Shown here piece after piece: positions 2,402 through 34,957 of a stretch of DNA of 64,000 nt. The notes under the pieces are model-generated. The model was given only the letters and a program-made list of their open reading frames with translations, had not been told where the DNA came from and ran no database searches. Position 1 is the stretch's first letter. Each line of letters begins with the position of its first letter. The position numbers were made by a program, and so were the translations under genes. The stretch is taken from IMG/VR virus record IMGVR_UViG_3300042889_001503, positions 1 to 64,000 of that record; one strand, written 5' to 3'.

Positions 2402-3214
2402 ATGAAAAAACTATATTTCTTAAATGAAGAAGAAAAAAATAGAATTTTAAATCTTCACGAAAGTGCCACAAAACGACAATATTTAAGTGAGCAAATTCCA
2501 TTTGGACCTCAAATACCACCAAACCCATATAAGACAGCCCTTGATAATATGAAAGGTAATGCGAATTGGGAAGGAAAATATTCTTGTGTTCCTAGCCAAG
2601 GGGTTAAACCAACCAAATTAAAAGATGGGTCAACTATGTATATTATTAATGGTGTAAAATACTATAGTAATGGTAGAAAAAAAATGGCTGACGGTAAAAT
2701 GTTAAATTATGCTTGTGAGACGGAATTTATTAAAGAAGGTGAACGACAAACAAATATTACAAAAGTTTATTGTAGTGTTAAAAATGGGATGATAACAACC
2801 GGAAGTCTTAAAAATTCACCATGGAACGACTATGTTAAATCTTTTAAAATAACTAGTCAAGAAATAGAAACGGCTAAAAAATCTTGTCCTAAAACTAATA
2901 AAACTAAACAAAGTTCTGGTAATAGACAACAAATTATTTCTCAAACAGAAAATAACACAAAGGCAATTCAGAAATTATTAAAGTTACCTGAAACGGGGAT
3001 TATGGATACAACATTATTACAAAAAATTAATGAAGTGTTAAATGGTGGGGGACAACAAGCTCAACCAAGACCTCAAGTTGAACCAATCCAACAACTGACT
3101 CCGGCAGGTGTTAAAACACAACAATTAACAACTATGTCTCCGGAACAATTAACCGCAGGGTTGCAACAAATGCAACAAAAAGCTGCCGCTGCAACCGCAG
3201 GATTAAAACGATAA
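2402..3214 (+). CDS. putative internal virion protein with shared N-terminal leader and weak PG-binding-like segment
   Basis: Leader EEEKNRILNLHESATKRQYLSEQ; segment KAIQKLLKLPETGIMDTTLL; TATTTAT at 2381. Confidence 0.7.
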   Translation: MKKLYFLNEEEKNRILNLHESATKRQYLSEQIPFGPQIPPNPYKTALDNMKGNANWEGKYSCVPSQGVKPTKLKDGSTMYIINGVKYYSNGRKKMADGKMLNYACETEFIKEGERQTNITKVYCSVKNGMITTGSLKNSPWNDYVKSFKITSQEIETAKKSCPKTNKTKQSSGNRQQIISQTENNTKAIQKLLKLPETGIMDTTLLQKINEVLNGGGQQAQPRPQVEPIQQLTPAGVKTQQLTTMSPEQLTAGLQQMQQKAAAATAGLKR

Positions 3215-3223
3215 TATATAAAG

Positions 3224-3871
3224 ATGAAAAAAGTTATATTAGAAGAAATTGAAAATATGAAATACCTTTTGGGGTATAAAAGAGGTGTTGTTATTTCTGA
3301 ACAAGAAGAAAAAAATGATTTGATTGATAAATACTCAACTAAATCAATATCAAATTCTATCGATTCAGGTGATTACTCAAATCTTGACCCAAGAGTTGCT
3401 GATGCAATTAAACAATCTCAGAATATGGTTGGTGGACAATCTATTTTACCTAACTCAACTTCAGGAACTACGTCAGGAACTACGTCAGGAACTACTTCAG
3501 GAACTACGTCAGGAGCAACAACTCCGGCACCATCAACCCCTGCAACACCAATAAAAATCGGTGTAAAATATCCATCAATAATGGAATTACAAAATTCATT
3601 AAATACTAAATTTCAATCAGGATTAACTCCGGATGGTATGTATGGACCTAAAACCTCATCAAGTATTTTAGCAGCATTAACAAAAACATCAACAACAACC
3701 ACCGCAAATACGACACCGGTAAATACTGTTGTTGGTGGTGACGCATCATCTGAAGCGATTAAAAAAACCGCTGAGGCAAATGCTTCAATATCTAAAGGTG
3801 TTGTTGCTAATGCACCAAAACCGGCAGCAAATTCTAATTTTGCTGAAGTAGACGGTGGTGATTTTACATAA
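3224..3871 (+). CDS. putative internal virion protein with leader, SGTT repeats and PG_binding_1-like domain
   Basis: Leader EEIENMKYLLGY..ISEQ; segment ELQNSLN..LTPDGMYGPKT. Confidence 0.7.
   Translation: MKKVILEEIENMKYLLGYKRGVVISEQEEKNDLIDKYSTKSISNSIDSGDYSNLDPRVADAIKQSQNMVGGQSILPNSTSGTTSGTTSGTTSGTTSGATTPAPSTPATPIKIGVKYPSIMELQNSLNTKFQSGLTPDGMYGPKTSSSILAALTKTSTTTTANTTPVNTVVGGDASSEAIKKTAEANASISKGVVANAPKPAANSNFAEVDGGDFT
3461..3520 (+). repeat. 12-bp tandem repeat (TCAGGAACTACG, about 5 copies) encoding SGTT
   Basis: Directly visible in the sequence. Confidence 0.95.
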
Positions 3872-3897
3872 AATATAAACAATAAAAAATAAAAAAA

Positions 3898-4335
3898 ATG
3901 AAAAATTTATTCAACAGTATTTCTCAAGAAGAAAAAAATAGAATACTTGAGATGCACTCAGGTAAAAAAAATGTAATATCTGAACAATCTGAACACGGAA
4001 AAGGGGCGATTATTCCTGAACCTAAAAAAAATAAAGTTGCAACACCACAGATGTTAGATAAAGTTTTAAAAAAACTTAATTATGATATTGAAACAGGGGG
4101 TTCTAAATTAAAATTTATGAAAAATATACCTGAAAAAAAATTAACTTTATTTGTTACTTTTACTCCGGAATATGCGATTGTTAATAAGAAAAAAGATAAA
4201 GAACCAACTCAAACAGGAACTGATGGTAAAATTCACGGAATGGGATTAGCGATTCCAGCTGAAAAGTTTCCTTTATTGTTGAAACCTAATACTCTAAAAG
4301 AATTTGAAAAATTTCTTATGAGTTGTGAAAAATAA
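3898..4335 (+). CDS. putative internal virion protein with shared leader
   Basis: Leader SQEEKNRILEMHSGKKNVISEQ. Confidence 0.7.
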   Translation: MKNLFNSISQEEKNRILEMHSGKKNVISEQSEHGKGAIIPEPKKNKVATPQMLDKVLKKLNYDIETGGSKLKFMKNIPEKKLTLFVTFTPEYAIVNKKKDKEPTQTGTDGKIHGMGLAIPAEKFPLLLKPNTLKEFEKFLMSCEK

Positions 4336-4337
4336 TA

Positions 4338-4367
4338 AAAAAAAGAGGACTATTTGTCCTCTTTTTT
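4338..4367. terminator. bidirectional terminator between convergent genes
   Basis: A run-GAGGAC-TATTT-GTCCTC-T run. Confidence 0.85.
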
Positions 4368-6395
4368 CTTTCTACTCTTTTTTACCTCTTCCGGTTTAAC
4401 TACCACTTCTTTCTCTACGGAGATAAGGGTGTATGGAACACCCTCCACCATATTTCCTTTGATAATCTCTTCGGACACAAAATCCTCAATTTTATCTTGG
4501 ATTGCTCTTTTGATTGGTCTAGCCCCGTAGGTCTCATCAAATCCAACTTCAGATATTAGTTCTAAAATAGTTTCATCAAATGTGATGTCATATTTCAACC
4601 CAACTAGTCTGTTGGATAATTTATCCAATTCCAATTTAACAATTTTCTTAACGTCTTCCTTAACCAAAGAATTAAAGATAACTACCTCATCAATTCTGTT
4701 TAAGAATTCCGGAGTAAAAAATTTCTTAAGTTCTTTTTTAAGTGTCTCACGTTTGTATTCTTCTTCCACATAAGAACTAGCACCTGTTTTGAAACCAACC
4801 CCTGAACCAAAATCTTGTAATTTTTTAGCTCCAACATTAGATGTCATAATGATGACACAATTTTTGAAGTTAATCTTTCTCCCCATACCATCGGTAAGGT
4901 GACCGTCGTCTAATACTTGAAGAAGTGTTGAGAAGATATCTTTGTTTGCTTTCTCAATCTCATCAAATAGAATTACAGAATAAGGTTTGTTTTTCACCTG
5001 TTCAGTTAATTGTCCCCCCTCATCGTATCCAACGTATCCCGGAGGTGCACCAATCAATCTTGAAATGGTGTGTTTCTCTTGGTATTCAGACATATCCACA
5101 CGAATCATATTATCTTCACTACCAAACATTTGTTTCGCTAGTTGTTTTGCCAAGTATGTTTTACCCACACCTGTTGACCCTAAGAAGATGAATGAACCGA
5201 TTGGTTTGTTCGGGTCCTTGATACCAATTCTATTTCTACGGATTGACTTTGCAATCTTTGAAACAGCTTCTGCTTGTCCAATTACTTTATCAGATAGATT
5301 CGCCTCCATCTCAGATAATAGTTTGGTTTCATCTGCATTTAATTTGGTTACCGGGATTTTAGTCATATTGGAAACAACCTCATAAACTAAATCAAGGGTG
5401 ATAACTTTCTTGTGAGTAAGAAGTTCTTCCTCAAACTTTTTCTTTTCAGTCTCAAGTTTAGTTAAGATACGTTTTTCTTTATCACGTAGGTTTGCTGCCT
5501 CTTCATATCGTTGTTGTTTTACAACGTCCACCTTTTCTTGTTTGATGTCGGCAGCTTGTTGTTTCAACTTCTCGATTGATTCCGGCATTTTAATTTCCAC
5601 TTGACTTCTCGCTCCAACCTCATCGATGATGTCAAACCCTTTGTCCGGGAATTCTCTATCGGTGATGTATCTGTCGGCTAAGTCAACACATACTGACAAT
5701 ACTTCATCCGTATAAGTTACCTTATGGAAGTTCTCGTATTTGTCTTTTACGTTTTTAAGGATTTCTAAAGTTTCAGCTTTGGTTGCTGAATCCACAACAA
5801 CTTTTTGGAAACGTCTTTCTAACGCTCCGTCCTTCTCAAAGTTTTTTCTATACTCATCCAAGGTTGTTGCTCCAACACATTGAATCTCCCCACGGGCAAG
5901 TGCCGGTTTAAAGATGTTTGATGCGTCCATTGAACCTGATGAATTTCCTGCACCAACTATGGTGTGGATTTCGTCAATGAATACGATGATGTTTGGTGCG
6001 TTTTGAAGTTCTTCGATGATTACTTTCATTCTTTCTTCAAATTGTCCACGGTATTTGGTTCCGGCAACAATTGATGTCATATCTAAGGATACGATACGTT
6101 TGTCCATTAAGTTTCTTGGACATTCCCCATTATAAATCATAATGGCAAGACCTTCAACGATTGCGGTTTTACCACAACCAGGTTCACCAATGATTATTGG
6201 GTTATTTTTCTTTCTACGTGAAAGGATTTGAGCAATTCGAGTAATTTCTCTTTCTCTACCAATAACCGGGTCAAGTTTACCCTCTTCGGCAAGTTTTATC
6301 AAATCTCTACTAAAATTGTCTAATACGGGTGTTGATGAGTCAGTCTTAACTGCTTTATTACCACCATTACTTCCACCATCCATAGATTCTGTCAT
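4350..6395 (-). CDS. clpC: ClpC-like AAA+ ATPase lacking the N-terminal domain
   Basis: Two Walker A motifs ([16 protein letters not shown]), [17 protein letters not shown], a UVR-like middle domain ([12 protein letters not shown]) and a VGF ClpP-docking loop. Confidence 0.9.
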
Positions 6396-6451
6396 AATTT
6401 ATTTGTTTTAATTAAGTATAAGGATTATTTTCACTTTTTCAAATGATTCTA

Positions 6452-6482
6452 CAAAAGTAATACAAATAATTGGATGGACAAA
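6452..6482 (-). promoter_or_regulatory. Bacteroidetes-type promoter for clpC (TTTG-N19-TACTTTTG)
   Basis: Minus strand TTTG at 6479-6482 and TACTTTTG at 6452-6459. Confidence 0.7.
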
Positions 6483-6507
6483 ACAAATTTTAATTATATT
6501 TATCAAT

Positions 6508-12038: not shown

Positions 12039-13808
12039 ATGTCGAATTTAACAAAAGAACAAGTATTAATAGAATACGTAAAATGTAGTAGAGATATTGA
12101 ATACGCACTTAAGACGTATTTAGAAACTTATGATAACACCGTTAAAAAATATGTTCCATTGGAACTTTTTCCGGACCAGTTAACATTACTGAATGACTAC
12201 GAAGAATACAATGAGAATATAGCATTAAAATACAGACAGGCCGGGGTATCAACAGTTACCGCGGCTTGGATGTCTAAAAAACTTGTATTCGCAAGAAAAG
12301 AAACTCCCGAAAAAATATTAATTATCGCCAATAAGTTGGATACTTCATTGGAGATGGCGAACAAGATAAAAGCGTTCGTTGGTCAATGGCCGTCTTGGAC
12401 AGGTGTAGATTTTGATAAAGCAAAAAATTCCCAAAAACATTATAAGTTAACAAACGGATGTGAGGTTAAAGCCGTTGCAACATCTAAGGATGCCTTGCGT
12501 GGATTTACACCAACCATACTTGTATTTGATGAGGCGGCGTTTATTGAGGCAGATAGTGATTTCTGGTCTGCCTGTATGGCGTCCCTATCTACGGGGGGTA
12601 AAGTAATTGTGGTTTCAACACCTAACGGTTATGACGCAATTTACTATGAAATATACGACCAAGCGTTACGTAATATGAATGACTTCAAAATTACGGAAAT
12701 GTTTTGGTATCGAGACCCAAGATACACCAAAGATTTATTTTTTGTTAAAACAGATAACATTATTCATTATTTGTTAAACAAAGAGGAATATGACCCTAAT
12801 GGATTTATTGATTGGGGTAGTAAATCATATGACGCTCGAAACTTTGATGATGTTAAATTATTAATGAATGACGGATACAAACCTTGTTCATCTTGGTTTG
12901 AGGCGATGGTTAAGAAATTAAAATACGATAAACGTAAGGTTTCTCAGGAGTTAGAATGTAACTTTTTAGGTTCCGGAGATAACGTATTTGATTCTCTTAT
13001 GATGCAAGATATTCGTGAAAATCAAATCCAAGAACCTATTAACAAATTGATGGGGAATGCTCTTTGGATTTGGAAGGAACCGGTTGTTGGACATAAATAC
13101 ATTATGGGTGTCGACGTTTCCCGTGGGGATTCTGAAGATTTTAGTTCATTTCAAATTGTTGATTTTGATGAAAGAGAACAAGTTGCTGAATATGTTGGTA
13201 AATTACCACCCGATACTATGGCTGAAATTTGTCATAAATGGGCTGTTATATATTCTTGTTTTGTCGTTATCGATATTACAGGTGGTATGGGTGTTGCAAC
13301 TTCAAGAAAACTCCAAGAAATGAATTATCGTGATTTATATGTTGATGGTGTTGATGTCTCTAACAAATGGAAATACGACCCAGCCGCGGCAGATAAAATT
13401 CCGGGATTAAATTTTAATAATAAAAGGGTTCAAATTATTGCCTCATTTGAAGAGGCGATGAGACATAAATTTAGGATTTATAGTTCTCGTTTAAATAATG
13501 AGATGAACACCTTTGTATATATCAATGGTAGACCTGACCACCAAAAAGGACATCACGATGATTTAATTATGTCAATCGCGATGGCGACGTATGTTGCGGA
13601 GTCTTCTTTTGGAAAATTAACTAAAGTTACGGAACAAACTAAAGCGATGTTAGATTCTTGGTCCGTTAACAATAATGAATCAATTAAAGAAAACATCAAT
13701 TTTAACCCTGTAATCCCACATTATCAAGATAGAATAAATCAATTTAACAGCCAACAAGTTAGTCGAGACGATTATCAAAAATATGGTTGGTTATTTGGCG
13801 GAATGTAA
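12039..13808 (+). CDS. terL: terminase large subunit (T4 gp17-like)
   Basis: LKYRQAGVST (Walker A region), LVFDEAAF (Walker B), STPNG, QELEC, nuclease motifs GVDVSRG and HDDLIM. Confidence 0.92.
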   Translation: MSNLTKEQVLIEYVKCSRDIEYALKTYLETYDNTVKKYVPLELFPDQLTLLNDYEEYNENIALKYRQAGVSTVTAAWMSKKLVFARKETPEKILIIANKLDTSLEMANKIKAFVGQWPSWTGVDFDKAKNSQKHYKLTNGCEVKAVATSKDALRGFTPTILVFDEAAFIEADSDFWSACMASLSTGGKVIVVSTPNGYDAIYYEIYDQALRNMNDFKITEMFWYRDPRYTKDLFFVKTDNIIHYLLNKEEYDPNGFIDWGSKSYDARNFDDVKLLMNDGYKPCSSWFEAMVKKLKYDKRKVSQELECNFLGSGDNVFDSLMMQDIRENQIQEPINKLMGNALWIWKEPVVGHKYIMGVDVSRGDSEDFSSFQIVDFDEREQVAEYVGKLPPDTMAEICHKWAVIYSCFVVIDITGGMGVATSRKLQEMNYRDLYVDGVDVSNKWKYDPAAADKIPGLNFNNKRVQIIASFEEAMRHKFRIYSSRLNNEMNTFVYINGRPDHQKGHHDDLIMSIAMATYVAESSFGKLTKVTEQTKAMLDSWSVNNNESIKENINFNPVIPHYQDRINQFNSQQVSRDDYQKYGWLFGGM

Positions 13809-16800: not shown

Positions 16801-17017
16801 CACTGATTTTATGTTTGCAAAAACACCGATTACATTCTCAACAATAAATTTAGATTCTATTTATAATGGATGGCAAACCAAAACACCGCAAACCGGATTA
16901 ACAATTAATTTTGGTTCTGCAAAATACACATTAGCGAGTCAACCGGGTAAAGATATACTAACAGGTTCAACTATGAGCGGTGGATATGGTTGGACAATAA
17001 CAGATGGGGGGATATAA
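13829..17017 (+). CDS. large surface/fibre protein: Pro/Thr linkers, Cys-rich module, beta-propeller-like repeats, DUF285/BspA-like repeats
   Basis: (PT)n tracts; F.PDG..L(Y/F)....Y.LSTPWDV repeats; IDWGDG; FNQPLSGWNVS.VT.M..MF repeats. Confidence 0.85.
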   Translation: MGFDSRKKSGNIIGGSRLNVIGQGIYNVKIIPPGFTKRLPAYADAGGNPPSQTPSNTPTQTPTLSITPSNTPTPTYTPTPTQTATPLYCDFSYYVNAITPTPTSTSLACDFTYEVELFTNTPTPTPTPTPTQTITQTPTQTETPTQTPTQTETPTQTPTPTQTETPTQTPTQTPTSSPLPPTVEYFQDCCDSLTVYKVGGVSTPIIVGNTYYINTDGFSGCGTAVSGPPYNSQSLIISVTSYSNCVLCEVDNPCPTPTPTPTMTVTPTNTQTPTVTQTPTVTQTPTNTPTNTQTPTNTLTPTPTPTVCIPQMIYSGEKFINIPLHTSASFKPDGTILYIAIHNGSPTDSVCAYSLSTPWDVSTITLPLIGCSIAVPVISGLTPTSVIGHHFSPDGSKLFVVETASKSVLRYILSTSWDVTTSSYSPGDLFTIVGLTPSHIDFTPDGLFMFVTVTGSLLKKYSLTTPWVINTGVVEIQSISNSIVSDFTFQNSGTYLFSIVSGPSIRRQTLSTPYDLTSIVPVLTQTENVSSFISGGNLYSLNFKDGYKGFIGGYYSTGLNGITAFNLTCEYDISGTLILPTPTPTPTQTVTPTNTVTPTPTLPPSFVSVWRTTTPSESITLPYSPSGTYSGTIDWGDGSISANTYANRTHTYSLSGNSTVTIYGTTNGWAFGNTGDILKIREVLKWGPLKISNGAQVFRGCSNLVLTGVTDTIDLTSVNNLIYMFGGCSSLTTINNVNSWNVSGITVMSNMFQSSTFDDDISSWSVSNVTDMNRMFQFGAFNHNINSWNVSGVTSMENMFRQSSFNQPLSGWNVSKVTSTMAGMFDGTLFNQDISMWNVSGVTSMSGMFRYTPFNYSLNNWNVSKVTNMSNMFYGASFNLPLSGWNVSKVTNMNSMFASTSQFNQNINSWNVSGVTDMGSMFYQNAYFNQPLSGWSVSNVRNMSFMFYNSPFNYPIGNWDVLNVTGMTSMFQSSSFNQDIGNWNISGVTNFTDFMFAKTPITFSTINLDSIYNGWQTKTPQTGLTINFGSAKYTLASQPGKDILTGSTMSGGYGWTITDGGI

Positions 17018-17020
17018 TAT

Positions 17021-19432: not shown

Positions 19433-19436
19433 TATT

Positions 19437-21650: not shown

Positions 21651-21653
21651 TTT

Positions 21654-21863
21654 ATGGAATATATATATAGAATATCGACAAATAATTATACCGGATATAC
21701 CGCCGATATAACTTTTAATCCATCAACAGGTGGAACAATTAATATTGGTACGGTTACATTACCGTATGATTACCCTACAGATTATCCGTATGGTGATTAT
21801 TATATATACATACCGGCAACAGGTGTATCGGGGTCTTTGAATAATCCCCCACCAACACCTTAA
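21654..21863 (+). CDS. stand-alone copy of the shared N-terminal module (69 aa)
   Basis: NYTGYTADITFNPSTGGTINIGTVTLPYDY..DYPYGDYYIY aligns with the N-termini of 17021, 19437 and 21884. Confidence 0.8.
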   Translation: MEYIYRISTNNYTGYTADITFNPSTGGTINIGTVTLPYDYPTDYPYGDYYIYIPATGVSGSLNNPPPTP

Positions 21864-21883
21864 TTTATACGAACTAACAATAT

Positions 21884-24800
21884 ATGAGTACAACTTTAGA
21901 AATATTAACTGCGAATTATAACGGACAATTAGCCGATATAACCTTTTTCCCTTGTTCGGGGGGGGTTATAAATATTGGTGAAGTTACATTACCGTATAAT
22001 TACGAATCCGAAAATTATTATGGAACTTACATTATTTACGTAATGTATTACGATGAAACTTGCTCGTTGGATATTCCTTGTATATCATTAACACCGACAA
22101 ATACACCGACAAATACACCGACACCTACTATTACAGATACTCCAACTCAAACACCAACTCAAACTAATACTGTTACACCAACTAATACTGGAACACCAGC
22201 ACAAACCCCAACACAAACGACAACGCAGACACAAACACAAACACCTTCCAATACAGCTACACCTACTAACACTATCACTCCAACTCAAACTCCAACTAAG
22301 ACTCATACTCCCACACCAACAAATCGCCCTACAACAACACCAACAATGACACCAACAAATACTCCTACACAAACAAATACTCAAACAAATACGCCAACAA
22401 ATACGCAAACGCAAACACAAACGCAAACTCAAACCACTACACAAACTCCGACTAACACTCCAACACAAACACAAACTCAAACACAAACACCGTCACCATT
22501 ACCTCCAACAATTGGGTATTTTGAAGATTGTTGTTACCCATCTATAATATATAAAGTGGGTGGAATAATATATCCTGTTTTTATTGATAACTTCTATTAT
22601 ATAGAGACTACCGGATATAGTGGTTGTGTTAAAGCAATAAATCCTACGTCATTTAACAGTCAATATGAAATTATTAGTTTAACTTCATATGTGAGTTGCC
22701 TTATTTGTCAATTAGACCACGAATGTATTTTACCTACACCTACACCAACTCCAACTCAAACTGTGACTCCAACGGTAACGCCAACAGTAACTCCAACAAT
22801 TTCAACAACACCAACAAATACTCCTACACAAACACAAACACAAACTTCAACACCAACACAAACACCTACCAATACACCAACAAACACTCAAACACAAACT
22901 CAAACACAAACACAAACTCAAACTTCAACACCGACACAAACACCTACTCAAACTCCGACTAACACTCCAACCAAAACTCAAACTCCAACAACAACAACGA
23001 CATTAACCGCAACACCAACTCAGACTCAAACTCCAACAAACACTCAAACACCAACAAAAACTCAAACACCAACACCAACAAAAACAATGACTCAAACACC
23101 TACTAATACTCAAACACAAACACCAACCAAAACTCAAACACAGACGCCTACAAACACACCAGTTTGTTCAGCACCTCAAATGTTAGGTGTTACATTGTCA
23201 TCAGGTTCAATTTTATCTGTTTCGATTATTCCGGGACCAAATTGTAGTGGTATTTTTATGATATATTCTTATGATAATATAAACTTTAATTCTGCTGTGG
23301 CAACTCCAAGTAACTGTACATCACCGTTTACTTTTGACTCTCTTACTACAACAGGAAATGTTTATGTAAAAGTGGGTCAATTATGTACATCAGGTGGTAT
23401 TAGCGCATATTCTGAAGTTTTCCCATATTTCTTCCCAACCCCAACTCCGACACCAACACCAACAAATACACAAACGCCTACTAAAACTCCAACCAACACT
23501 CCAACTAAAACTCAAACCCCAACAACAACAACAACATTAACTGCAACTCCGACTCAGACTCAGACGCCAACTAAAACTCCTACTAACACTCCAACCAAAA
23601 CACAAACACAAACTCCAACTAAAACTCAAACTCCAACAACAACAACAACATTAACTGCAACTCCGACGCAAACACAAACGCCTACTAAAACTCCTACACA
23701 AACACCTACTCGAACAAACACTCCAACGCCAACAACATCGTGTGGTGTTACATTAATTTCTACCACATATGTTTCAGGAACCACTTGGAATTATAATTTC
23801 ACAACAGCAGGTTCTTGTGGAACACTTTTACCGGAATATTCGTCTGATAATATAACTTGGACTTTGGGTGGTGCAGGTGGTTGTACTTCACCTAGGTCGG
23901 CAATAACCGGTATTAATAGTGGAACAATATACTTTAGAATGACATTATTTTGTTCGTCTCTTACGGGAGTTTCAAATGTTATTACTTATGTGTTCCCATC
24001 ACCAACACCTACACCTACAAGAACTCAAACACCAACACCAACAAAAACACCTACACCTACACCGACTGAAACACCACCTGGAGTAACTTGTGTATGTTAT
24101 GAATTATATTGGTCTCCACCAGGTGGTCCTTTCTTTGGTTCAACAACTTTTGATTATATTGATTGTGAAGGGTTCCCTGCAAGTTCCTTTGCTAACAATA
24201 TGGGTGATTCACCGAATATTTGTGCTCAAGAAAACACTATTTCATTTGGCGGTGGTGACAATTCAGGTGGTTGGCTTCCATCAATATATAATTGTTGCGC
24301 AACAAATATTACATTAGGATATAGAGTGTCAAATGCTGTATGTTCGTTACCTGGTTGGGCGTTAGTTAATCAATGTATAAATCGTTCCGCAATTTTAGGT
24401 TTATGTGACGCAACCGAATTATATGATGATGATATATCCGGTAATTGTACCTTCGCATTTGCAGCTGCGGGTTATTATAAAACCACTGATAACTTTAGTA
24501 GAAGATATTGGGATGGAACCGCATTTACGGGTGCTTGTTTTTCGTGTGGTTGTTTAGTTGTTAATACAGTAATAACATTATCTGATGGTTCAACTAAATT
24601 AATACAAGATGTTCAAGTTAACGACATACTTAAATCTATTGATGTTTCAGGAATGCCACAACCATCAAACGAATGGTACTCTTGGAGTAGTGACACTTTA
24701 AATTATGTAGAATCAACCTCTACAGTAATTAATTTTACAATATATGAATTTGATTCGGTTATTAATATTAATAACGATAAATTAATTGCGACTGATTCTC

Positions 24801-25006
24801 ATAACCACGTTGTTAAACAAAATGGTGTTTGGTATATCAGAACAACATCTGATTTAAATGTTGGTGATGTATTATTAGATATTGACAATACTGAATTTGA
24901 AATCACATCATTAGTGACAATTACAGAATCAACAACAGTTTATAACGTTGATGTGAATAATAGTAATTTATATTTTGCGAATAATGTCTTAACTCACAAT
25001 AAGTAA
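21884..25006 (+). CDS. mucin-like Thr/Pro-rich surface protein with C-terminal Hint domain
   Basis: Shared N-module; long TPTQT tracts; Cys-rich modules; C-terminal CLVVNT...TDSH...VYNVDV..LYFANNVLTHNK. Confidence 0.85.
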   Translation: MSTTLEILTANYNGQLADITFFPCSGGVINIGEVTLPYNYESENYYGTYIIYVMYYDETCSLDIPCISLTPTNTPTNTPTPTITDTPTQTPTQTNTVTPTNTGTPAQTPTQTTTQTQTQTPSNTATPTNTITPTQTPTKTHTPTPTNRPTTTPTMTPTNTPTQTNTQTNTPTNTQTQTQTQTQTTTQTPTNTPTQTQTQTQTPSPLPPTIGYFEDCCYPSIIYKVGGIIYPVFIDNFYYIETTGYSGCVKAINPTSFNSQYEIISLTSYVSCLICQLDHECILPTPTPTPTQTVTPTVTPTVTPTISTTPTNTPTQTQTQTSTPTQTPTNTPTNTQTQTQTQTQTQTSTPTQTPTQTPTNTPTKTQTPTTTTTLTATPTQTQTPTNTQTPTKTQTPTPTKTMTQTPTNTQTQTPTKTQTQTPTNTPVCSAPQMLGVTLSSGSILSVSIIPGPNCSGIFMIYSYDNINFNSAVATPSNCTSPFTFDSLTTTGNVYVKVGQLCTSGGISAYSEVFPYFFPTPTPTPTPTNTQTPTKTPTNTPTKTQTPTTTTTLTATPTQTQTPTKTPTNTPTKTQTQTPTKTQTPTTTTTLTATPTQTQTPTKTPTQTPTRTNTPTPTTSCGVTLISTTYVSGTTWNYNFTTAGSCGTLLPEYSSDNITWTLGGAGGCTSPRSAITGINSGTIYFRMTLFCSSLTGVSNVITYVFPSPTPTPTRTQTPTPTKTPTPTPTETPPGVTCVCYELYWSPPGGPFFGSTTFDYIDCEGFPASSFANNMGDSPNICAQENTISFGGGDNSGGWLPSIYNCCATNITLGYRVSNAVCSLPGWALVNQCINRSAILGLCDATELYDDDISGNCTFAFAAAGYYKTTDNFSRRYWDGTAFTGACFSCGCLVVNTVITLSDGSTKLIQDVQVNDILKSIDVSGMPQPSNEWYSWSSDTLNYVESTSTVINFTIYEFDSVININNDKLIATDSHNHVVKQNGVWYIRTTSDLNVGDVLLDIDNTEFEITSLVTITESTTVYNVDVNNSNLYFANNVLTHNK
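24551..25003 (+). other. Hint (intein/Hedgehog-like) domain
   Basis: Cys1 at 24551, block B TxxH, block F VYN, terminal His-Asn followed by a single Lys and a stop. Confidence 0.8.
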
Positions 25007-25070: not shown

Positions 25071-26957
25071 ATGGAAAATAATGAAAATAATGATTTAACG
25101 GTTTGGCAAAGGTTATCAAGAGCCTTTGGACCAAACGCGTTATTAAATCAAGACTACCCAACATATAAGTTAGATAAGAAAGAGTTGTTAAAGACAACAT
25201 CACAAGCGGAATATGAAAGAGAAAAATTACAAGCTCAACAAACATATTACCTATCTAACCAATGGACTAAGATTGAAAGTAATCTATACACTCAAGCAGT
25301 TTATTATGAACCAACTCGTTTGGCTTCATTTTACGATTATGAATCTATGGAATACACCCCTGAGATATCAGCGGCATTAGACATCTATGGTGAAGAATCA
25401 ACAACTGTTGATGAGAATGGATATATGTTACAAATTTATTCTGAATCAAAAAGAATAAAATCTATACTAGCCGATTTATTCAATAACGTATTAGACGTTA
25501 ATACGAATTTAACTATGTGGACAAGAAATACTTGTAAGTATGGTGATAACTTTGTTTATTTAAAATTAGATTCAGATAAAGGTATTGTTGGTTGTATGCA
25601 ATTACCAAACATTGAAATAGAACGTTTGGAAAGAGGTATGGCAGCAAAATCTGCAACTATAGATGAACCTGCAGAACACAAAGGATTAAGATTTAAGTGG
25701 AAGGCAAAAGATATGGAGTTTAACTCTTGGGAAGTTGCCCACTTCCGTTTATTAGGTGACGATAGAAAACTTCCATACGGAACGTCAATGTTAGAAAAAG
25801 CAAGACGTATTTGGAAACAATTATTATTATCGGAAGATGCGATGTTAATTTATAGAACTTCAAGAGCACCGGAAAGACGTGTGTTCAAAGTATTCGTTGG
25901 TAATATGGATGATAAAGATGTTGAGGCTTACGTACAACGTGTTGCAAACAAATTTAAACGTGACCAAGTTGTTGATGCTAAAACAGGTAATGTCGATATG
26001 AGATTCAACCAAATGGCTGTTGACCAAGATTACTTTATTCCTGTTAGAGACCCAGCGGCGGCATCACCAATTGATACGTTACCGGGAGCAACAAACTTAT
26101 CTGAAATTGCCGATATAGAATATATCCAAAAGAAATTATTAACCGCTCTTCGTGTTCCTAAAGCATTTTTAGGATTTGAAGAAACTGCCGGTGATGGTAA
26201 GAATTTATCATTACAGGATATTCGTTTTGCAAGAACAATCAATAAGATTCAAAAATCAATGATTGCCGAATTAAATAAAATTGCAATCATTCATTTATTC
26301 TTATTAGGGTTTGAAGATGAGTTATCTAACTTTACGTTAGGACTAACCAATCCATCATCCCAAGCAGATTTATTAAAGAATGACCTTTGGAAAGAAAAAA
26401 TTGCATTATACCAACAAGCCGTTGCGGCAATTGCGGGTATTGCTCCGGTATCTGTATCGTGGGCTAAGAAACATATTTTAGGATTCTCTGATGAGGAAAT
26501 CAAACTTGATTTACAACAACAAAGAATTGAGATGGCTGTCGGAGCTGAATTAACAAATACGGCAACTATCATAACACATACAGGTATCTTCGATAATATC
26601 GATAAATTATATGGTAACCCTGCATCCGGAGCAACTGCCGGTGGTGCGGCACCATCATCCCCACCACCACCGGGAGGTGGAGGAGGTTTCGGCGGAGGTG
26701 GAGACTTAGGTGGAGGAATGGAAGATTTAGGTGGACCTGAACCAGGACCTGAACCGGGTGGACCTGAACCGGGTGGAGCCCCTGAGGCGGCAGCTCCCGA
26801 AGCAGAAGTAACTCCTGAATCATTTAATAGAGATAATTTAAAAATATTGGTAGAAAGAAGTAATATGACAGAAGATGATTCATACATTGATTTATCCAAA
26901 GGTGGAAACTCTTTAGGAGAAATTGAAGCTCAATTAGGTAAACTTCTAAAAGATTAG
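25071..26957 (+). CDS. portal protein (T4 gp20-like)
   Basis: LLLSEDAMLIYRTSRAPERRVFKVFVGNM, DYFIP, IDTLPG, YIQKKLLTALRVP; G/P-rich tail. Confidence 0.92.
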   Translation: MENNENNDLTVWQRLSRAFGPNALLNQDYPTYKLDKKELLKTTSQAEYEREKLQAQQTYYLSNQWTKIESNLYTQAVYYEPTRLASFYDYESMEYTPEISAALDIYGEESTTVDENGYMLQIYSESKRIKSILADLFNNVLDVNTNLTMWTRNTCKYGDNFVYLKLDSDKGIVGCMQLPNIEIERLERGMAAKSATIDEPAEHKGLRFKWKAKDMEFNSWEVAHFRLLGDDRKLPYGTSMLEKARRIWKQLLLSEDAMLIYRTSRAPERRVFKVFVGNMDDKDVEAYVQRVANKFKRDQVVDAKTGNVDMRFNQMAVDQDYFIPVRDPAAASPIDTLPGATNLSEIADIEYIQKKLLTALRVPKAFLGFEETAGDGKNLSLQDIRFARTINKIQKSMIAELNKIAIIHLFLLGFEDELSNFTLGLTNPSSQADLLKNDLWKEKIALYQQAVAAIAGIAPVSVSWAKKHILGFSDEEIKLDLQQQRIEMAVGAELTNTATIITHTGIFDNIDKLYGNPASGATAGGAAPSSPPPPGGGGGFGGGGDLGGGMEDLGGPEPGPEPGGPEPGGAPEAAAPEAEVTPESFNRDNLKILVERSNMTEDDSYIDLSKGGNSLGEIEAQLGKLLKD

Positions 26958-28475: not shown

Positions 28476-29201
28476 ATGAATTTAAGAATATTACAACCAA
28501 GTGAATCAGGGAAAGGTATATTAGTTGAATACGATGCTGGGTATATTAACCCAAATGATAATCGTAACGAAACATTAATTAGAGAATCTAGCGAAACTCT
28601 TGACCACACTAAACCAATTGAGTTTTATGCCGTATTACAAAAATATGATACCCCTAATAGAAATGGTAGATTATATCCTGAACGTATATTAAAAAGAGAG
28701 GCGGAGAATTATAAAAAAATGATTAAAAAGGGAACAGCCCTATCCGAGTTAAATCACCCGGAATCATCTTTAATCGATTTAGATAGAGTTTCTCACGCAA
28801 TCACCGAAGTATGGTGGGAAGGTAATGTCCTAATGGGTAAAATAAAACTACTTACATCACCGGGATATCACGAAAGTGGTATTTGTTCAACCAAAGGTGA
28901 CTTAGCAGCTAACTACCTAAGACAAGGAGTTACATTAGGTATCTCATCAAGAGGTGTAGGTTCCCTTAAAAAGATTGGTGAACAAAATGAAGTTCAAGAC
29001 GATTTTGAATTAATCTGTTTTGATTTAGTATCATCACCATCAACCCCGGGAGCGTATCTATTCTTAAATAAAGAGGATAAACAACTATACGATGAGAACT
29101 TAGAAGAAGAGAAAAAAATGAGTGTTGAGAGACACGTTGGTGATTCCGGAAATAAATCGCTTGACTTAATGAAAAAATTAAACGATTATTTGGGTTACTA
29201 A
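28476..29201 (+). CDS. prohead core protease (T4 gp21-like)
   Basis: NRNGRLYP, ELNHP, SHAI, GISSRGVGSL, DLVSSPSTPGAY. Confidence 0.92.
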   Translation: MNLRILQPSESGKGILVEYDAGYINPNDNRNETLIRESSETLDHTKPIEFYAVLQKYDTPNRNGRLYPERILKREAENYKKMIKKGTALSELNHPESSLIDLDRVSHAITEVWWEGNVLMGKIKLLTSPGYHESGICSTKGDLAANYLRQGVTLGISSRGVGSLKKIGEQNEVQDDFELICFDLVSSPSTPGAYLFLNKEDKQLYDENLEEEKKMSVERHVGDSGNKSLDLMKKLNDYLGY

Positions 29202-29592: not shown

Positions 29593-31104
29593 ATGGCAAA
29601 AGAAAAATCTTTAGTTGAAGAGGCTATCATCCAAATGAAAAACTTGGAAGAAGCGGTAGCTGAAAATGCAAAAGGAATACTTGCTTCTACAATGAAACAA
29701 GAAATCAAAGACCTAGTAAAAGAATCTCTAACTGAACAAGACGAGATTAACCCTGATGACGTTGAAGTGGATGAACCTATGGGTTCTGATGATATTGCCG
29801 ATATTGATATGGGTGATGATTCAGATGAAGAAGGTGATGAAATGGATACTGATGATACTGATGACGAAGAAGATATGGACTTTGGTGACGAAGAAGATAT
29901 GGACGACGAGGAAGACACTATTGACTTAACTGACGCAGACGATGAAGAAGTACTTAGAGTATTTCAACTTATGGGTCCGGATGACAACATTGTCGTAACA
30001 AAAGACGACAAAGGAAACACTCACCTTAAAGATGAGGAAACCGGTAAAGAGTATATGATTGTTGGTGAAAGTGAAGAAGAAGAATTTGAAATGTCTGAAG
30101 AATGGGACGAAGAACTTGAAGAAGATGAGATGGGTGACGAATCTATTGAATCAATCGTTGAGAGAATGTTCGGTTCTGATGATGAAGACGAAGACGAAGT
30201 GGAATTTGATTTTGAAGAGTTTGACGAATCTGATGATATGGACGATGAAGAAATCGTTTATGAAATCGAAATGGATGAAGAAGACGAAGAAGAATTAGGT
30301 GAAGAAGAAATGGATGATGAATCTATTACTGAAGCTAAAATGTCTATCAAACCAAAAGGTGTTGGGATGGGTAATCAATCAAAATTTAAATTTAACAAAT
30401 CACCTAATCAAGGAACAGGATTTAAAACTAAAATGAAAGAGGCTCCAAAATCTGTAGGAACAGGTAAAGCGAAATTCGAGTATAAAGAAGGTGAAAATTC
30501 AGGAACTAAATTAGGAACAAACAAAGTTGTTAAGAAAACTGAAACAAAAGAAGGTTCAACTAGAAAACCAATGGTTAAAAAAGTTGAAGGTAAAAAAGAA
30601 GAGACAAAAGAGGCTGTAAGAACTTTAGGTTCAGGGTCTAACTTTAGAAAAGGTGGTTTACCAAAACCAAGAGCTCATTCAAGTTTTAATACTGCTATCA
30701 AAGAAAGTAACACTAATTCAGAGTTACAAGTTCTTAGAGAAAAAAACGAAGAATACAGAAAAGCACTTAATGTTTTCAGAAGTAAATTAAACGAGGTTGC
30801 AATCTTCAATTCAAACTTGGCTTACGCTACACGTTTGTTCACTGAACATTCAACATCAAAACAAGAAAAAATTAACATTTTAAGAAGATTTGATGGTGTT
30901 GAAACTATCAAAGAATCTAAAAATCTATATCAGGTCGTTAAAAATGAATTATCCTCAGGAACTAAAACTCAAACTATGAACGAGTCAATTGAAAGAACAA
31001 TCGCAAAATCACCTTCTACAGGAGCGGTTAACTTACTTGAATCAAAAACATATGAGAATCCACAGTTCTTAAGAATGAAAGATTTAATGGCAAAAATAAA
31101 ATAA
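29593..31104 (+). CDS. prohead scaffold/core protein (gp22-like)
   Basis: Lies between protease and MCP; very acidic middle; coiled-coil NEVAIFNSNLAYATRLF; C-terminal FLRMKDLMAKIK. Confidence 0.8.
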   Translation: MAKEKSLVEEAIIQMKNLEEAVAENAKGILASTMKQEIKDLVKESLTEQDEINPDDVEVDEPMGSDDIADIDMGDDSDEEGDEMDTDDTDDEEDMDFGDEEDMDDEEDTIDLTDADDEEVLRVFQLMGPDDNIVVTKDDKGNTHLKDEETGKEYMIVGESEEEEFEMSEEWDEELEEDEMGDESIESIVERMFGSDDEDEDEVEFDFEEFDESDDMDDEEIVYEIEMDEEDEEELGEEEMDDESITEAKMSIKPKGVGMGNQSKFKFNKSPNQGTGFKTKMKEAPKSVGTGKAKFEYKEGENSGTKLGTNKVVKKTETKEGSTRKPMVKKVEGKKEETKEAVRTLGSGSNFRKGGLPKPRAHSSFNTAIKESNTNSELQVLREKNEEYRKALNVFRSKLNEVAIFNSNLAYATRLFTEHSTSKQEKINILRRFDGVETIKESKNLYQVVKNELSSGTKTQTMNESIERTIAKSPSTGAVNLLESKTYENPQFLRMKDLMAKIK

Positions 31105-31136
31105 AAATAAATTAAAATTAATAAAAACCAAAAAAA

Positions 31137-33008
31137 ATGGGAGCATTATTAGAATCAGGATTAGTTGGTAACATCGGGTTAAAACACCTTAAAGTTATCA
31201 AAGAAGACACAATCAACAAATGGGATAAATTAGGATTCCTAGAAGGTCTTAAAGGACACATGAGAGAAAACGTAGCTCAGTTATATGAGAACCAAGCGTC
31301 TTTCTTAATAAACGAAGCTACAGGTGAAGGTTCAAACGGTTCATTCGAAACGGTTGTATTCCCTATCGTAAGAAGAGTATTCTCTAAATTACTTGCGAAT
31401 GAAATCGTATCAGTACAAGCTATGAACTTACCAATCGGTAAATTGTTCTTCTTCGTACCTAAAATTCAAGGTTACCAATCAGGTCAAGAAACTATCTTAG
31501 GAACTCAATTAGGTGGTGGTACTCACTACGGACCAATTGGTGCGGCTGATGGACAAACTGCGGCTGATGGTCAATCAGGAGCTGGTTACACAGGAGCAAA
31601 CGCATTCAAGAAAAATCTTTATGATTTATTCTATGAAGGAAACGAAGGTCAATTAGACCCTCCAGGATTGTTTGACTACTCTAAAGGACAATGGTCGGCA
31701 GTTACTAAACCAACAACAGTTATGGTTTGGTCAAATGGTAGTTTAGTTGTTGCTGACGCAACTGCATTAGCTAACCAATTCAATGGAAAAAACATTAGAA
31801 AAGTAATCGTAGCATTATCAGGATTCACAACTGCTGGTACAGGTAAATTAATCGGACCAGACGGTAATGAAGTTGATACTGAAACTTTCTTATCTGATTT
31901 AAGAATCTACAGTGATTCTACAACTGCATGGACTTCAACAACATCACCTTGTAGTGTTGTAAGTGGGTCTACCGGAATAAACTCATTATTGTTTAGAGTT
32001 GTTACTCAACAATATGGTGAAGGTATCGTTTCAGGATTAAACGGAAGAGGAACTACATCATTTGCAACTACAGGTAATAACGGTACTTACAATGATACTT
32101 GTTCTCCTGCAGGAATCATCTACTTAGAAGTTGATTTATCTTGTCCAACTTGTCCTTCTTGTGGTGACACATTAGACGGTTATACAGGAACAACTATCGG
32201 AGTATTACCATCAACTGGGTTTACTGCTGTTTACAGACGTTACGCTGATATGGAATTTGAAGATAAAATCGGTGAGGTTTCTTTCGAATTAGATTCAGTT
32301 ACTGTATCTGTTACAGAAAGAAAATTAAGAGCACAATGGTCTCCTGAGTTAGCTCAAGACGTTGCAGCTTTCCACAACATCGATGCTGAGGCTGAATTAA
32401 CAGCTTTATTATCTGAACAAGTTGCGGCTGAAATCGACCGTGAAATCTTAAGAGATTTACGTAAAGGTGCGGCATGGAACTTACGTTGGGATTACAATGG
32501 TTGGAGAAGAATCTCTTCAACAACAAACTATACACAAAAAGATTGGAACCAAACTTTGATTACTGCAATTAACCAATTGTCAGCACAAATCCACAAATCT
32601 ACTTTAAGAGGTGGAGCTAACTGGATTGTAGTATCTTCTGAGGTTTCAGCGATTATGGATGACTTAGAATACTTCCACGTATCTAATGCTTCACCTGAAC
32701 AAGACCAATATAATATGGGTATTGAAAGAGTTGGAACATTAGCAGGACGTTACCAAGTATATCGTGACCCTTACTTCCCAGCTAACCAAGTGTTAATTGG
32801 ACACAAAGGAACATCGTTACTTGATACAGGATACATCTACGCTCCGTATGTACCATTACAATTAACACCTACAATGTACAACCCATTCAACTTTACACCG
32901 ATTAAAGGTATAATGACTCGTTACGCGAAAAAGATGGTGAATAATAGATTTTACGGCAGAATTACTGTAGATGGTGTTAGAACATTCGATTTAAGAGAAT
33001 TGAGATAA
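31137..33008 (+). CDS. major capsid protein (T4 gp23-like)
   Basis: FPIVRRVF..L.A..IVSVQAM, RKLRAQWSPELAQDV.AFH.IDAEAEL, EIDREI, GYIYAPYVPL, GIMTRYA. Confidence 0.95.
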   Translation: MGALLESGLVGNIGLKHLKVIKEDTINKWDKLGFLEGLKGHMRENVAQLYENQASFLINEATGEGSNGSFETVVFPIVRRVFSKLLANEIVSVQAMNLPIGKLFFFVPKIQGYQSGQETILGTQLGGGTHYGPIGAADGQTAADGQSGAGYTGANAFKKNLYDLFYEGNEGQLDPPGLFDYSKGQWSAVTKPTTVMVWSNGSLVVADATALANQFNGKNIRKVIVALSGFTTAGTGKLIGPDGNEVDTETFLSDLRIYSDSTTAWTSTTSPCSVVSGSTGINSLLFRVVTQQYGEGIVSGLNGRGTTSFATTGNNGTYNDTCSPAGIIYLEVDLSCPTCPSCGDTLDGYTGTTIGVLPSTGFTAVYRRYADMEFEDKIGEVSFELDSVTVSVTERKLRAQWSPELAQDVAAFHNIDAEAELTALLSEQVAAEIDREILRDLRKGAAWNLRWDYNGWRRISSTTNYTQKDWNQTLITAINQLSAQIHKSTLRGGANWIVVSSEVSAIMDDLEYFHVSNASPEQDQYNMGIERVGTLAGRYQVYRDPYFPANQVLIGHKGTSLLDTGYIYAPYVPLQLTPTMYNPFNFTPIKGIMTRYAKKMVNNRFYGRITVDGVRTFDLRELR

Positions 33009-33030
33009 TCAAAATCTTAAAATATTTAAC

Positions 33031-33058
33031 AAAAAGGGACTATATGTCCCTTTTTTTT
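33031..33058 (+). terminator. rho-independent terminator after MCP
   Basis: AAAAAGGGAC-TATAT-GTCCCTTTTT followed by a T run. Confidence 0.9.
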
Positions 33059-33103
33059 ATGTATATTTGTAAACAATCAAGTTTATGGTTGTATTTATAA
33101 TAT

Positions 33104-33784
33104 ATGAAGAAAATACTATTAGAAAAATCAGTTGTTGATGAAATTTTGAGATTATATAATGATGAGATGTTAGGCTCTCCATCTATATCTGAAAAATTAA
33201 ATATTAACAAACAAGTTGTGTTACGAACATTAAAAGAAAATGGTGCTATTGTCGGTATCTCCGGTAGAAAATATAAGGGTGGGAAATCTGAATCAGATAA
33301 ACGACATTATCTTAAAAATAGAGAAAAACGATTACAATATTTTTCTGATTGGCAAAAAGATAATAGAGACCGTCTAAATGATTACCATCAAAAATGGAGA
33401 GAAAAAAATATTGATAAACATAGAGAATATAAACGTAAGTATGAAAAACATCGTAAAGATACTGACCCCCTCTATAAACTAATCACCAATTTCAGAACTG
33501 CAATATGGACAGTATTAAAAGAAAGTAATGTAGACAAATATGGACATTACTTTGATGTTCTACAATATAGTCCGGAGGAATTGATTAATCATTTAGAAAA
33601 ACAATTTAAGGATGATATGACGTGGGATAACTATGGAATTTGGCACGTGGACCATAAACTACCAATTACATCTTTTGATATACAAGAGATGGGTGACGAG
33701 GAATTTATGAGATGTTGGTGTTTGGATAACCTTCAACCAATGTGGGGTGAGGAGAATATTCGTAAATCAAATAAAGTTTTTTAA
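33104..33784 (+). CDS. HNH endonuclease (free-standing, homing-type)
   Basis: WHVDHKLP...NLQPMWGEENIRKSNK; N-terminal HTH-like segment; basic helical linker. Confidence 0.8.
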   Translation: MKKILLEKSVVDEILRLYNDEMLGSPSISEKLNINKQVVLRTLKENGAIVGISGRKYKGGKSESDKRHYLKNREKRLQYFSDWQKDNRDRLNDYHQKWREKNIDKHREYKRKYEKHRKDTDPLYKLITNFRTAIWTVLKESNVDKYGHYFDVLQYSPEELINHLEKQFKDDMTWDNYGIWHVDHKLPITSFDIQEMGDEEFMRCWCLDNLQPMWGEENIRKSNKVF

Positions 33785-33814
33785 ATACTGAGGTATTTAT
33801 ATAAAAAGAAAAAT

Positions 33815-34957
33815 ATGAACAATTTATTTGAGATATCGAGTGAGGAAAGAAGTAGAATATTAAATCTTCACGAGAGTGCAACAAAACGACAATATTTAAC
33901 GTTAGAACAGGTTGTTCAACCCCAATATCATTCGACAACTACATCAAAATCGACTAACACTACTTTTCCGGTTCAAAATGTTGGTGATAAATTTGCTTAT
34001 GGTCAGGTTGATTCTCCAAATGTTAAGTCAAAAATAATTTCATTAAAACCTCAAATTGATAAATTTATCAAGGATGATGGTGGTAAAAATTTTGTTATAA
34101 CTATTACTGCAGGGGAATCTAATGTTACGAATCCAAAAGGATTTGAAGAAAAGGGTAGTTTAGCATTGGCGAGAGCTAATTCTGTGAAAGGGTATTTTGA
34201 AGAAGTATTTCAAGATTTAATTAAAAATGGTGTTTTAACTATTAAAGTTCCTACAGATGTTAGTCAAGTATCTTTAGGTAAAACACCATATGATAAGACT
34301 AAAGGTGATAATAAAAATCCTGATAAGATTAAATTATATAGTGGTGAGCAATTTGTAAACTTTACTATCACAGGTAGTGGTTCAAAGTGTAATTTTGTTT
34401 TAGATGTTGAAGCTGGTCAAGGGGACCCTAATTTAGATTATGTAACAACTGATGAGATTTTAGAAGGTAAAGGGGAAGTTACATTTACTCCGGGACAGAT
34501 TCCGGATAGATTGGTTATTATGGATAGTCAGGGTAAAATAGAAACGGACACAGGGTATATTACGGGTGACGTTAGTAAATACCCGGATTGGAAATATACT
34601 CCACTATATGTTTATCTTTTAACTTTGGTAAGTCAAACTAACCCGGTTGCGGTTTCAGGTAGTGAAATATTAACGATAACAGTTACAGATTATGCTGATT
34701 TGGTTAAACAATTATTGAATGACCCCAATTCACGTAGTTATCAAAAAATGGGTAGTGAGATAGAACCGGGGTTAAAAGCTATGGCGGGTATGATTAAAAA
34801 AGGGCGAACAGAGTTTGTTATTTATAAATTATCGAATGCGGGAACCACAGTTCAATTTGATTCACCAAATAATGATAAAAAAATCAAAGTATATTCACCT
34901 ATTGGAACCGGAACAATTAAAACAGGTTACGGGTTAGTAGGTCGTTGTATTAATTAA
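33815..34957 (+). CDS. putative internal virion protein with shared leader and OmpA-C-like segment
   Basis: Leader EERSRILNLHESATKRQYLTLEQ; AGES.V.N....LALARANSVKGYF. Confidence 0.65.
   Translation: MNNLFEISSEERSRILNLHESATKRQYLTLEQVVQPQYHSTTTSKSTNTTFPVQNVGDKFAYGQVDSPNVKSKIISLKPQIDKFIKDDGGKNFVITITAGESNVTNPKGFEEKGSLALARANSVKGYFEEVFQDLIKNGVLTIKVPTDVSQVSLGKTPYDKTKGDNKNPDKIKLYSGEQFVNFTITGSGSKCNFVLDVEAGQGDPNLDYVTTDEILEGKGEVTFTPGQIPDRLVIMDSQGKIETDTGYITGDVSKYPDWKYTPLYVYLLTLVSQTNPVAVSGSEILTITVTDYADLVKQLLNDPNSRSYQKMGSEIEPGLKAMAGMIKKGRTEFVIYKLSNAGTTVQFDSPNNDKKIKVYSPIGTGTIKTGYGLVGRCIN

Follow-up and report, generated by a model that had tools for sequence, protein, structure and literature searches.

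Leader-tagged proteins with predicted wall-binding folds and no export signals in a virus with a T4-type head

In T4-type phages, the proteins inside the head are known as anti-defence cargo that acts in the cytoplasm. In T4 itself, the 10-residue N-terminal capsid-targeting sequence (CTS) of IPIII is enough to get a protein packaged and is taken off afterwards, and the protease gp21 cuts after L/I-x-E (PMC9026906). Other stored proteins, gp14-gp16 of T7 and gp7, gp16 and gp20 of P22, are held in the capsid and are ejected ahead of the DNA, and the wall-cutting domain of T7 gp16 is a precedent for capsid-stored proteins that act on the cell wall. To our knowledge, only short-tailed phages have so far been found to store wall-active proteins in the capsid. 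Here we analyze a 64,000-nt stretch of DNA (the window) of a large phage that is uncultured, from the IMG/VR virus record IMGVR_UViG_3300042889_001503, corresponding to bases 70628-134627 of one 159,912-bp IMG/VR virus record, to which all G000 coordinates refer. Three proteins encoded on its plus strand, P0001 (2402..3214), P0002 (3224..3871) and P0003 (33815..34957), are the main subject. The comparisons described below indirectly support the view that leader-tagged proteins of this virus, which has a T4-type head, carry predicted wall-binding folds without export signals. By analogy with T4, we favor the reading that they are capsid-targeted, protease-trimmed internal proteins that would be ejected to act on the host wall, and we give this reading a probability of roughly 55%.

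Six open reading frames (ORFs) of the record begin with one of two leaders, which are always N-terminal. The type-A leader (..EEKNRILNLHE.ATKRQYL.EQ) is found in P0001, P0003, P0366 and P0365, and the type-B leader (..EEIENMKYLLGYKRGVVISEQ) in P0002 and P0364. Outside the leader these proteins are unalike: the similarity between P0001 and P0003 is confined to residues 1-33 (64% identity, E 3e-10), and that between P0002 and P0364 to residues 2-28 (70% identity, E 3e-9). The leaders of the six ORFs end in YLSE/Q, VISE/Q, VISE/Q, LTLE/Q, VISE/Q and TIIE/S, each of them L/I-x-E or a near variant. Across 106 diverse type-A proteins, L28, E30 and E20 are each at least 90% conserved and H19 is invariant; the conservation of L28 and E30 thus places an L-x-E at the leader's end, and a second copy (NLHE) is present in the type-A leaders of the window and in the A8 consensus. 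These proteins are therefore like T4 IPI, IPII, IPIII and Alt, which carry a CTS processed by gp21, in having a short N-terminal propeptide that is common to unrelated proteins and ends in L/I-x-E. They differ in leader length (about 30 residues, against about 10 for the T4 CTS), in lacking detectable sequence similarity to it and in using two leader types.

The likeness to T4 extends to the head genes, which are of the gp20, gp21 and gp23 families. On the plus strand, positions 12-33 kb of the window hold a T4-type head module with genes for a terminase (12039-13808), a portal protein (25071..26957, plus strand; Portal_T4 (gp20) family, 267 bits), a prohead protease (28476..29201, plus strand; Peptidase_S77, the T4 gp21 family, 85 bits) and a major capsid protein (31137..33008, plus strand; Gp23 family, 252 bits). 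The Peptidase_S77 protein is the presumed leader-removing enzyme. Between the protease and capsid genes, in the position of T4 gp22, lies the gene for an acidic 503-aa putative scaffold protein (29593..31104, plus strand), which gave no family match and is placed by position and sequence alone. Conservation between this protein and its counterpart in a relative ends at SLTE/Q, and the first 60 residues of the capsid protein are near-identical to those of the relative as far as LINE/A; these motifs, lying where conservation breaks off, look like propeptide boundaries. The P0003 gene is itself located inside the head module. An HNH / endonuclease VII-like gene (33104-33784) is inserted between it and the capsid gene, and the same insertion is seen in a relative, L014 (4371-5051). 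The nearest cultured relatives, Flavobacterium phage immuto and T4-like cyanophages, are distant and are detected by the capsid protein only (32-46% identity).

P0003 belongs to a large, well conserved family and joins a type-A leader to an OmpA-like domain (residues 46-189) and a C-terminal beta-sandwich. In an AlphaFold2 (AF2) model with a mean predicted local distance difference test score (pLDDT) of 80, residues 46-189 adopt the beta-alpha-beta-alpha-beta-beta fold of OmpA C-terminal domains, and Foldseek matched the model to the OmpA, OprF, MotB and RmpM domains with a probability of 1.0. When the domain was compared by hhalign with six E. coli OmpA-like domains, KGSLALARANSVK aligned with NQGLSERRAQSV (E 8e-4), which puts the invariant R120 of P0003 on the signature Arg, the second Arg of 'ERRA' in alpha2 of E. 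coli OmpA ('RA'). A single E. coli OmpA had given a spurious local match as the reference, and it was the six-member reference that gave the signature helix. Sequence searches of the PDB with the full P0003 profile, the domain or its 48-aa core returned no OmpA-like chain, such chains being found by structure comparison only, and OmpA matches from Pfam are weak and occur in 10 of 26 P0003 homologues (E at least 0.022). Compared with OmpA, Pal, MotB, TagL/TssL of type VI secretion systems (T6SS) and DotK of type IV secretion systems (T4SS), P0003 has a sub-threshold Pfam score, apparently a Glu for the ligand-binding Asp and a beta2-alpha2 loop longer by four residues, and it differs from such anchors in having no signal peptide or membrane anchor, a capsid-type leader and the C-terminal beta-sandwich. 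Two of its cysteines, C192 and C378, are invariant. One homologue, UniProt A0A6J5KTY6 from an uncultured Caudovirales phage (Foldseek E 1e-36, 35% identity over 379 columns), is named 'OmpA-like domain-containing protein', and therefore the OmpA-like label already exists as an automatic annotation; the entry records no leader, head context or function.

The second protein, P0002 (215 aa), consists of a type-B leader (residues 1-26, VISE/Q), a low-complexity Thr/Ser/Gly linker, a PG_binding_1-like segment (residues ~110-190, nt 3551-3793) and a low-complexity tail. Two stretches are invariant across its family, the leader and TPIKIGVKYPSI.ELQN.LNTK.Q..L..DGKYGPKT..S.LAAL; within the latter, ELQNSLN...DGMYGPKT corresponds to the 'LQxxL' of helix 1 and the 'DGxFGxxT' loop of PG_binding_1 and is invariant in the family. 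PG_binding_1 is matched by 21 of 28 P0002 homologues (best 1e-4), PHROG endolysin families match the same stretch (1e-4), and hhalign of the segment with the PG_binding_1 domain of the virus's own endolysin gave a probability of 81% (E 1.2e-5, 42% identity over 31 columns) in an alignment that runs from helix 1 through the DG-loop and stops early in helix 2. Helix 3 of the domain could be the conserved D173-SEAIKKTAE that follows a Thr-rich insert. In searches of the PDB, P0002 profiles found only non-significant wall-binding matches (4xxt, 4lpq and 7rum, E 0.16-4.3). The language-model neighbors of both P0001 and P0002 are viral PG_binding_1 clusters (scores 0.82-0.85), which we treat as leads only. 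The linker (residues ~73-104, window 3440-3530) is a tandem (T/A)xxG-type low-complexity repeat, with a count that ranges from 2 to more than 12 units among close homologues.

P0001 (270 aa) has a type-A leader (residues 1-30, YLSE/Q), two Cys-pair modules (residues ~42-161), a helix-loop-helix (residues 173-213, nt 2918-3040) that resembles helices 2-3 of PG_binding_1, and a Q/P-rich tail. The conserved TKAIQKLLGLPETG.MD..LLQKIN.KLNG aligns with positions 28-56 of the PG_binding_1 model, its second half only (E 0.048). A PG_binding_1 match from Pfam is found in 14 of 26 homologues (best 6e-4), and the family profile detects in the PDB, with E-values of 3e-4 to 2e-3, the prodomains of matrix metalloproteinases (MMPs), which belong to the same Pfam family. 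The segment shows no similarity to that of P0002 or to the endolysin domain, and no structure resembling the P0001 model turned up in Foldseek pdb, VIA wide or atlas. What P0001 contains is a conserved hairpin related to half of PG_binding_1, not a demonstrated wall-binding domain. The middle of the family (residues 42-161, window 2525-2884) consists of small modules of two types, which homologues have shuffled or duplicated, each module keeping exactly one Cys pair with a spacing of ~38-47 residues, and 23 of 26 members have two or four cysteines. Conserved Cys pairs are typical of proteins that act outside the cytoplasm, and the paired cysteines of P0001 and P0003 suggest disulfide-stabilized proteins that would work there.

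Export signals were checked by a hydropathy scan with two controls. No signal peptide-like stretch was seen in the cargos: within their first 35 residues, hydropathy over 8 residues peaks at no more than 0.88, against 3.42 for a lipoprotein control. No 19-residue window exceeds 1.55, so no membrane helix was found either. A missing signal peptide is not diagnostic alone, because the virus's own endolysin (G000 17142-17966) has a PG_binding_1 domain (48.8 bits) and yet none. A preliminary description of the window had reported a PG_binding_1-like motif in P0002, a weaker copy of it in P0001 and an OmpA-C-like segment in P0003, with no Sec signal in any of them. All three motifs lie in these ORFs, and the scan agrees that Sec signals are lacking. 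The OmpA-C-like segment is borne out by the AF2 model and Foldseek, and the P0002 motif by the homologue matches and the alignment to the endolysin domain, though its own Pfam score is sub-threshold; the P0001 motif is present and conserved but is half a domain, two helices only. This observation is thus partly confirmed, two of the three domains being real and the third a half-motif.

To follow the leader beyond this record, a 33-column type-A profile was used to search protein clusters. It found 1416 cluster representatives, 345 of them at E <= 1e-10, and in almost all of the best 150 of the 1416 the leader occupies residues 1-33. A Pfam scan (E <= 0.01) covered the 106 proteins of at least 150 aa among these best 150 matches and identified PG_binding_1 in nine (best 9.5e-16), PG_binding_3 in four, YkuD in two (6e-8), and Tlde1 (2e-8), TseH (3e-8) and OmpA (5.9e-6) in one each; all other matches are singletons with E >4e-4. 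Every recognizable cargo domain among the 106 is, by prediction, wall-binding or wall-modifying. The scan is the strongest support for the central observation of the preliminary description, that leader-bearing cargos converge on peptidoglycan, and it goes well past what that description could detect, extending the observation to enzymes that are known as T6SS effectors acting in the periplasm.

Relatives are found on contigs of 216-464 kb. In L014, a 216-kb contig, the stretch immediately behind the capsid gene and an HNH gene carries four leader-bearing genes, which encode a P0001-like protein, a P0002-like protein, a 376-aa TseH-domain protein (34 bits, above the cut-off) and a P0003 homologue. 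In the window, the cargo cassette at the left is flanked by genes for a 455-aa protein and an M20/M28-like peptidase (122..2350, plus strand, with the peptidase at 1532-2350) and, on the right, by a gene for a 681-aa AAA+ Clp/ATP-dependent protease or ClpB-like protein (4350..6395, minus strand; phrog_4871, 802 bits). The locus is syntenic on a 292-kb contig, a 464-kb contig and a short TARA contig, each with a 451-455-aa gene and an M20-like peptidase on the left, an AAA+ gene on the right and different leader-bearing cassettes between them, which include 438-472-aa proteins with the H...S/A-G-C motif typical of L,D-transpeptidase folds. With its flanks conserved and its cassettes differing, the locus is comparable in behavior to the variable locus for internal proteins in T4-type phages, whose internal proteins likewise come from a cassette-like locus and have no export signals. 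The YkuD and Tlde1 matches are not tied to named proteins; a motif scan and direct reading point to P0455 and P0432, and a phmmer search of the PDB with these two enzyme-type relatives found nothing.

No TseH-, YkuD- or Tlde1-type cargo domain was found in the record studied here. As for the T6SS effectors Tlde1 and TseH, it is the relatives that join Tlde1/YkuD-like and TseH-like domains to the same leader, and delivery would be by the phage head and not by a T6SS spike. Genes of 200 aa each with a signal peptide or lipoprotein signal adjoin the enzyme cargo in L017 (8035-8637), L019 (4405-5007) and L014 (7303-7905, minus strand), their products giving one Peptidase_C92 and two weak Peptidase_M54 matches. 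The window holds binding-type cargos only, with no signal-peptide gene as a neighbor. By analogy, an enzyme cargo next to a signal-peptide gene resembles an effector-immunity pairing. We also observed a homologue of the trans-translation factor SmpB a few kb upstream of the cargo locus in L017 and L018 (1203-1637; contigs of 292-464 kb).

Under the favored reading, the leader of about 30 residues, in either of its two sequence types, would act like the T4 capsid-targeting sequence and dock unrelated proteins to the prohead core, after which the gp21-type S77 protease would trim it behind the conserved L/I-x-E. The mature cargo would remain in the filled head, exit via the tail at infection, reach the periplasm while the tail is penetrating and act there on the host wall, by binding in the case of the window's three proteins and by cutting or remodeling in the case of the relatives' enzymes. 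Observed in the data are the folds and motifs, the common leaders, the family of the protease and the enrichment in wall-related domains across the clade; we infer packaging, cleavage, ejection, periplasmic delivery and wall binding from the T4 precedent, the domain content, the missing export signals and the paired cysteines.

Several points weigh against this reading, beginning with the fact that it is built on analogy. The T4 internal proteins known so far act in the cytoplasm, as do the cargos IPI* and Alt, whereas the predicted domains here point to the wall and periplasm, and we know of no direct myovirus precedent for periplasmic release from the head via the tail tube. No tail sheath family was found in the record, for which CheckV estimates a completeness of 53%, and the candidate tail genes at 37571-46415 are blank in PHROG and Pfam. 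A tblastn search of GenBank phages with P0002, P0003 and the leader gave no match, hence no cultured relative in that collection. About 85 of the 106 leader-bearing proteins are without a recognizable domain, and the convergence on the wall therefore concerns the recognizable cargos, not all. Within the window, P0003 has no Pfam match, staying below the 27.2-bit gathering threshold of OmpA (PF00691), and P0002 scores 13.9 bits against PG_binding_1 (E 0.064, profile positions 3-34), under the 23-bit gathering threshold of PF01471. The PG_binding_1 score of P0001 is also below the curated cut-off, its AF2 model (pLDDT 68) shows two helices only and no complete three-helix bundle, and PG_binding_1 folds have non-wall roles too, as in MMP prodomains. 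In the P0003 model the invariant E101 ('AGES'), which is placed by topology only (strand 90-104, helix 115-131), appears to replace the ligand-binding 'TD' Asp of OmpA-like domains, and with this Glu P0003 may or may not bind the ligand. A complex prediction of the leader with the putative scaffold, with a score of 0.00, counts neither for nor against the reading.

Among the other explanations, the one that survives best, although we consider it unlikely, keeps the prohead targeting and takes the cargos to be structural or scaffolding proteins of the inner core, or DNA-associated proteins, with folds that are re-used and never meet peptidoglycan. It would suit the basic mature forms of P0001 and P0366 (pI 9.7 and 9.5), which are like T4 internal proteins in this respect, but not a cargo locus that varies among relatives, as essential structural genes do not. 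As for the P0001 motif, its best matches in the PDB are MMP prodomains, PG_binding_1 folds that work without peptidoglycan, and P0001 has no full domain; relatives, however, put the same leader on YkuD, Tlde1, TseH and canonical PG_binding_1 domains (E 9.5e-16), which would be senseless as inert parts. At P0003 the evidence divides within a single site, where a Glu appears to replace the canonical Asp and yet the pair E101/R120, located where the OmpA-like fold has its ligand site, is invariant.

The preliminary description had gone further and proposed that the ejected proteins anchor or build a trans-envelope DNA channel; they would then be like T7 gp14/15/16 or the P22 ejection proteins. 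OmpA-like anchors, as used in T6SS, flagellar stators and T4SS, would suit a conduit fixed to the wall, and T7 gp16 establishes that capsid-stored proteins can act on peptidoglycan. No feature in our analysis supports such a role, however. None of the cargos matches a PHROG (E<=0.1) or Pfam family of internal virion proteins or of the ejectosome, and they have no membrane-spanning or long helical segments; in place of a podovirus ejectosome we see small, soluble, modular cargos without channel-forming features, associated with a T4-type head. Such a head is usually paired with a contractile tail that itself spans the envelope. The cargo set also varies among relatives and includes enzymes typical of toxins, not of channel parts, and the YkuD/Tlde1-type and TseH-like cargos point to predicted wall effectors over channel subunits. 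We therefore regard a conduit as quite improbable, and the interpretation given in the preliminary description as partly supported.

Doubtful to a still greater degree is a role as late lysis accessories, made in the cytoplasm and reaching the wall after the holin opens the membrane, with a shared N-terminus unrelated to the capsid. Canonical endolysins, including this virus's own, have no signal peptide, and P0364 is encoded directly downstream of that endolysin. PHROG endolysin families do match P0002, but over the binding module only, and the three window proteins have no catalytic domain. A lysis role is also at odds with the S77-type cleavage motif of the leaders, which recurs in the capsid and putative scaffold proteins, and with the position of P0003, and of the four L014 cargos, inside the head module. 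That the motifs are chance resemblances in low-complexity or fast-evolving phage ORFs is scarcely credible: single Pfam E-values of 0.05-0.06 and a P0001 model with no fold match might suggest it, but these large families conserve the motifs more strongly than any other part, 21 of 28 homologues in one case and 14 of 26 in another match the same family, independent cargos carry canonical domains, and the idea is already contradicted for P0003 and P0002.

The other leader-bearing ORFs of the record are P0366 (145 aa; 3898..4335, plus strand), which has a type-A-like leader (VISE/Q) and a basic cargo without a recognized fold, P0365 (G000 69446-69763), with a type-A leader, and P0364 (G000 18010-18888), with a type-B leader and an extremely acidic mature part (pI 4.1). 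The endolysin gene that precedes P0364 (G000 17142-17966) encodes an N-terminal PG_binding_1 and a C-terminal domain that by eye resembles GH19-type lysozymes. Also outside the window, G000 36905-38329 encodes a protein of 474 aa in which strongly hydrophobic segments are combined with a canonical PG_binding_1 at the C-terminus (55.7 bits); this protein may be anchored in the membrane, bind the wall and belong to the apparatus for lysis or entry.

The window has a G+C content of ~32%. Positions 13829-25006 are occupied by a run of very large paralogous ORFs (1062, 803, 744, 69 and 1040 aa), of which the last four have a common N-terminal module of ~60 aa (..NYDGQ.ADITF.PCSGG.INIGEV.LPYNY..) and the first three have DUF285/BspA-like repeats (418 bits in the first). 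They are probably receptor-binding or fiber proteins; GC skew is strongly negative at 14-16 kb and 22-24 kb, within this run. Genes for a nucleotide-sugar epimerase and an aminotransferase (PHROG E 4e-72 and 5e-82) are found at 48044-51064 (minus strand), adjoining a region of very low G+C (52001-54000; 0.217 at 52-54 kb), and may be a sugar-modification cassette of foreign origin.

T4-type capsid targeting joined to wall-directed cargo would be a combination otherwise seen only, and in a different form, in podovirus core proteins. A broader picture, which we put forward tentatively and with less confidence than the favored reading for the window's proteins, is that a widespread clade of phages with T4-type heads, all uncultured and some with contigs of >200 kb, loads a polymorphic, cassette-like arsenal into the capsid via a single conserved, cleavable propeptide, that this arsenal comprises wall anchors together with Tlde1/YkuD-like and TseH-like enzymes and is fired into the periplasm, and that the neighboring signal-peptide genes encode immunity proteins. 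If this is true, the phage head would be a device that delivers effectors to the cell wall instead of the cytoplasm, and a leader present on at least 1400 protein clusters would mark a second, periplasmic destination for head cargo. Phage ejection proteins would then be linked to the T6SS effector domain repertoire. In metagenomes the leader can also serve as an easily searched sequence marker of capsid cargo, and it is a candidate tag for loading foreign proteins into such phages.

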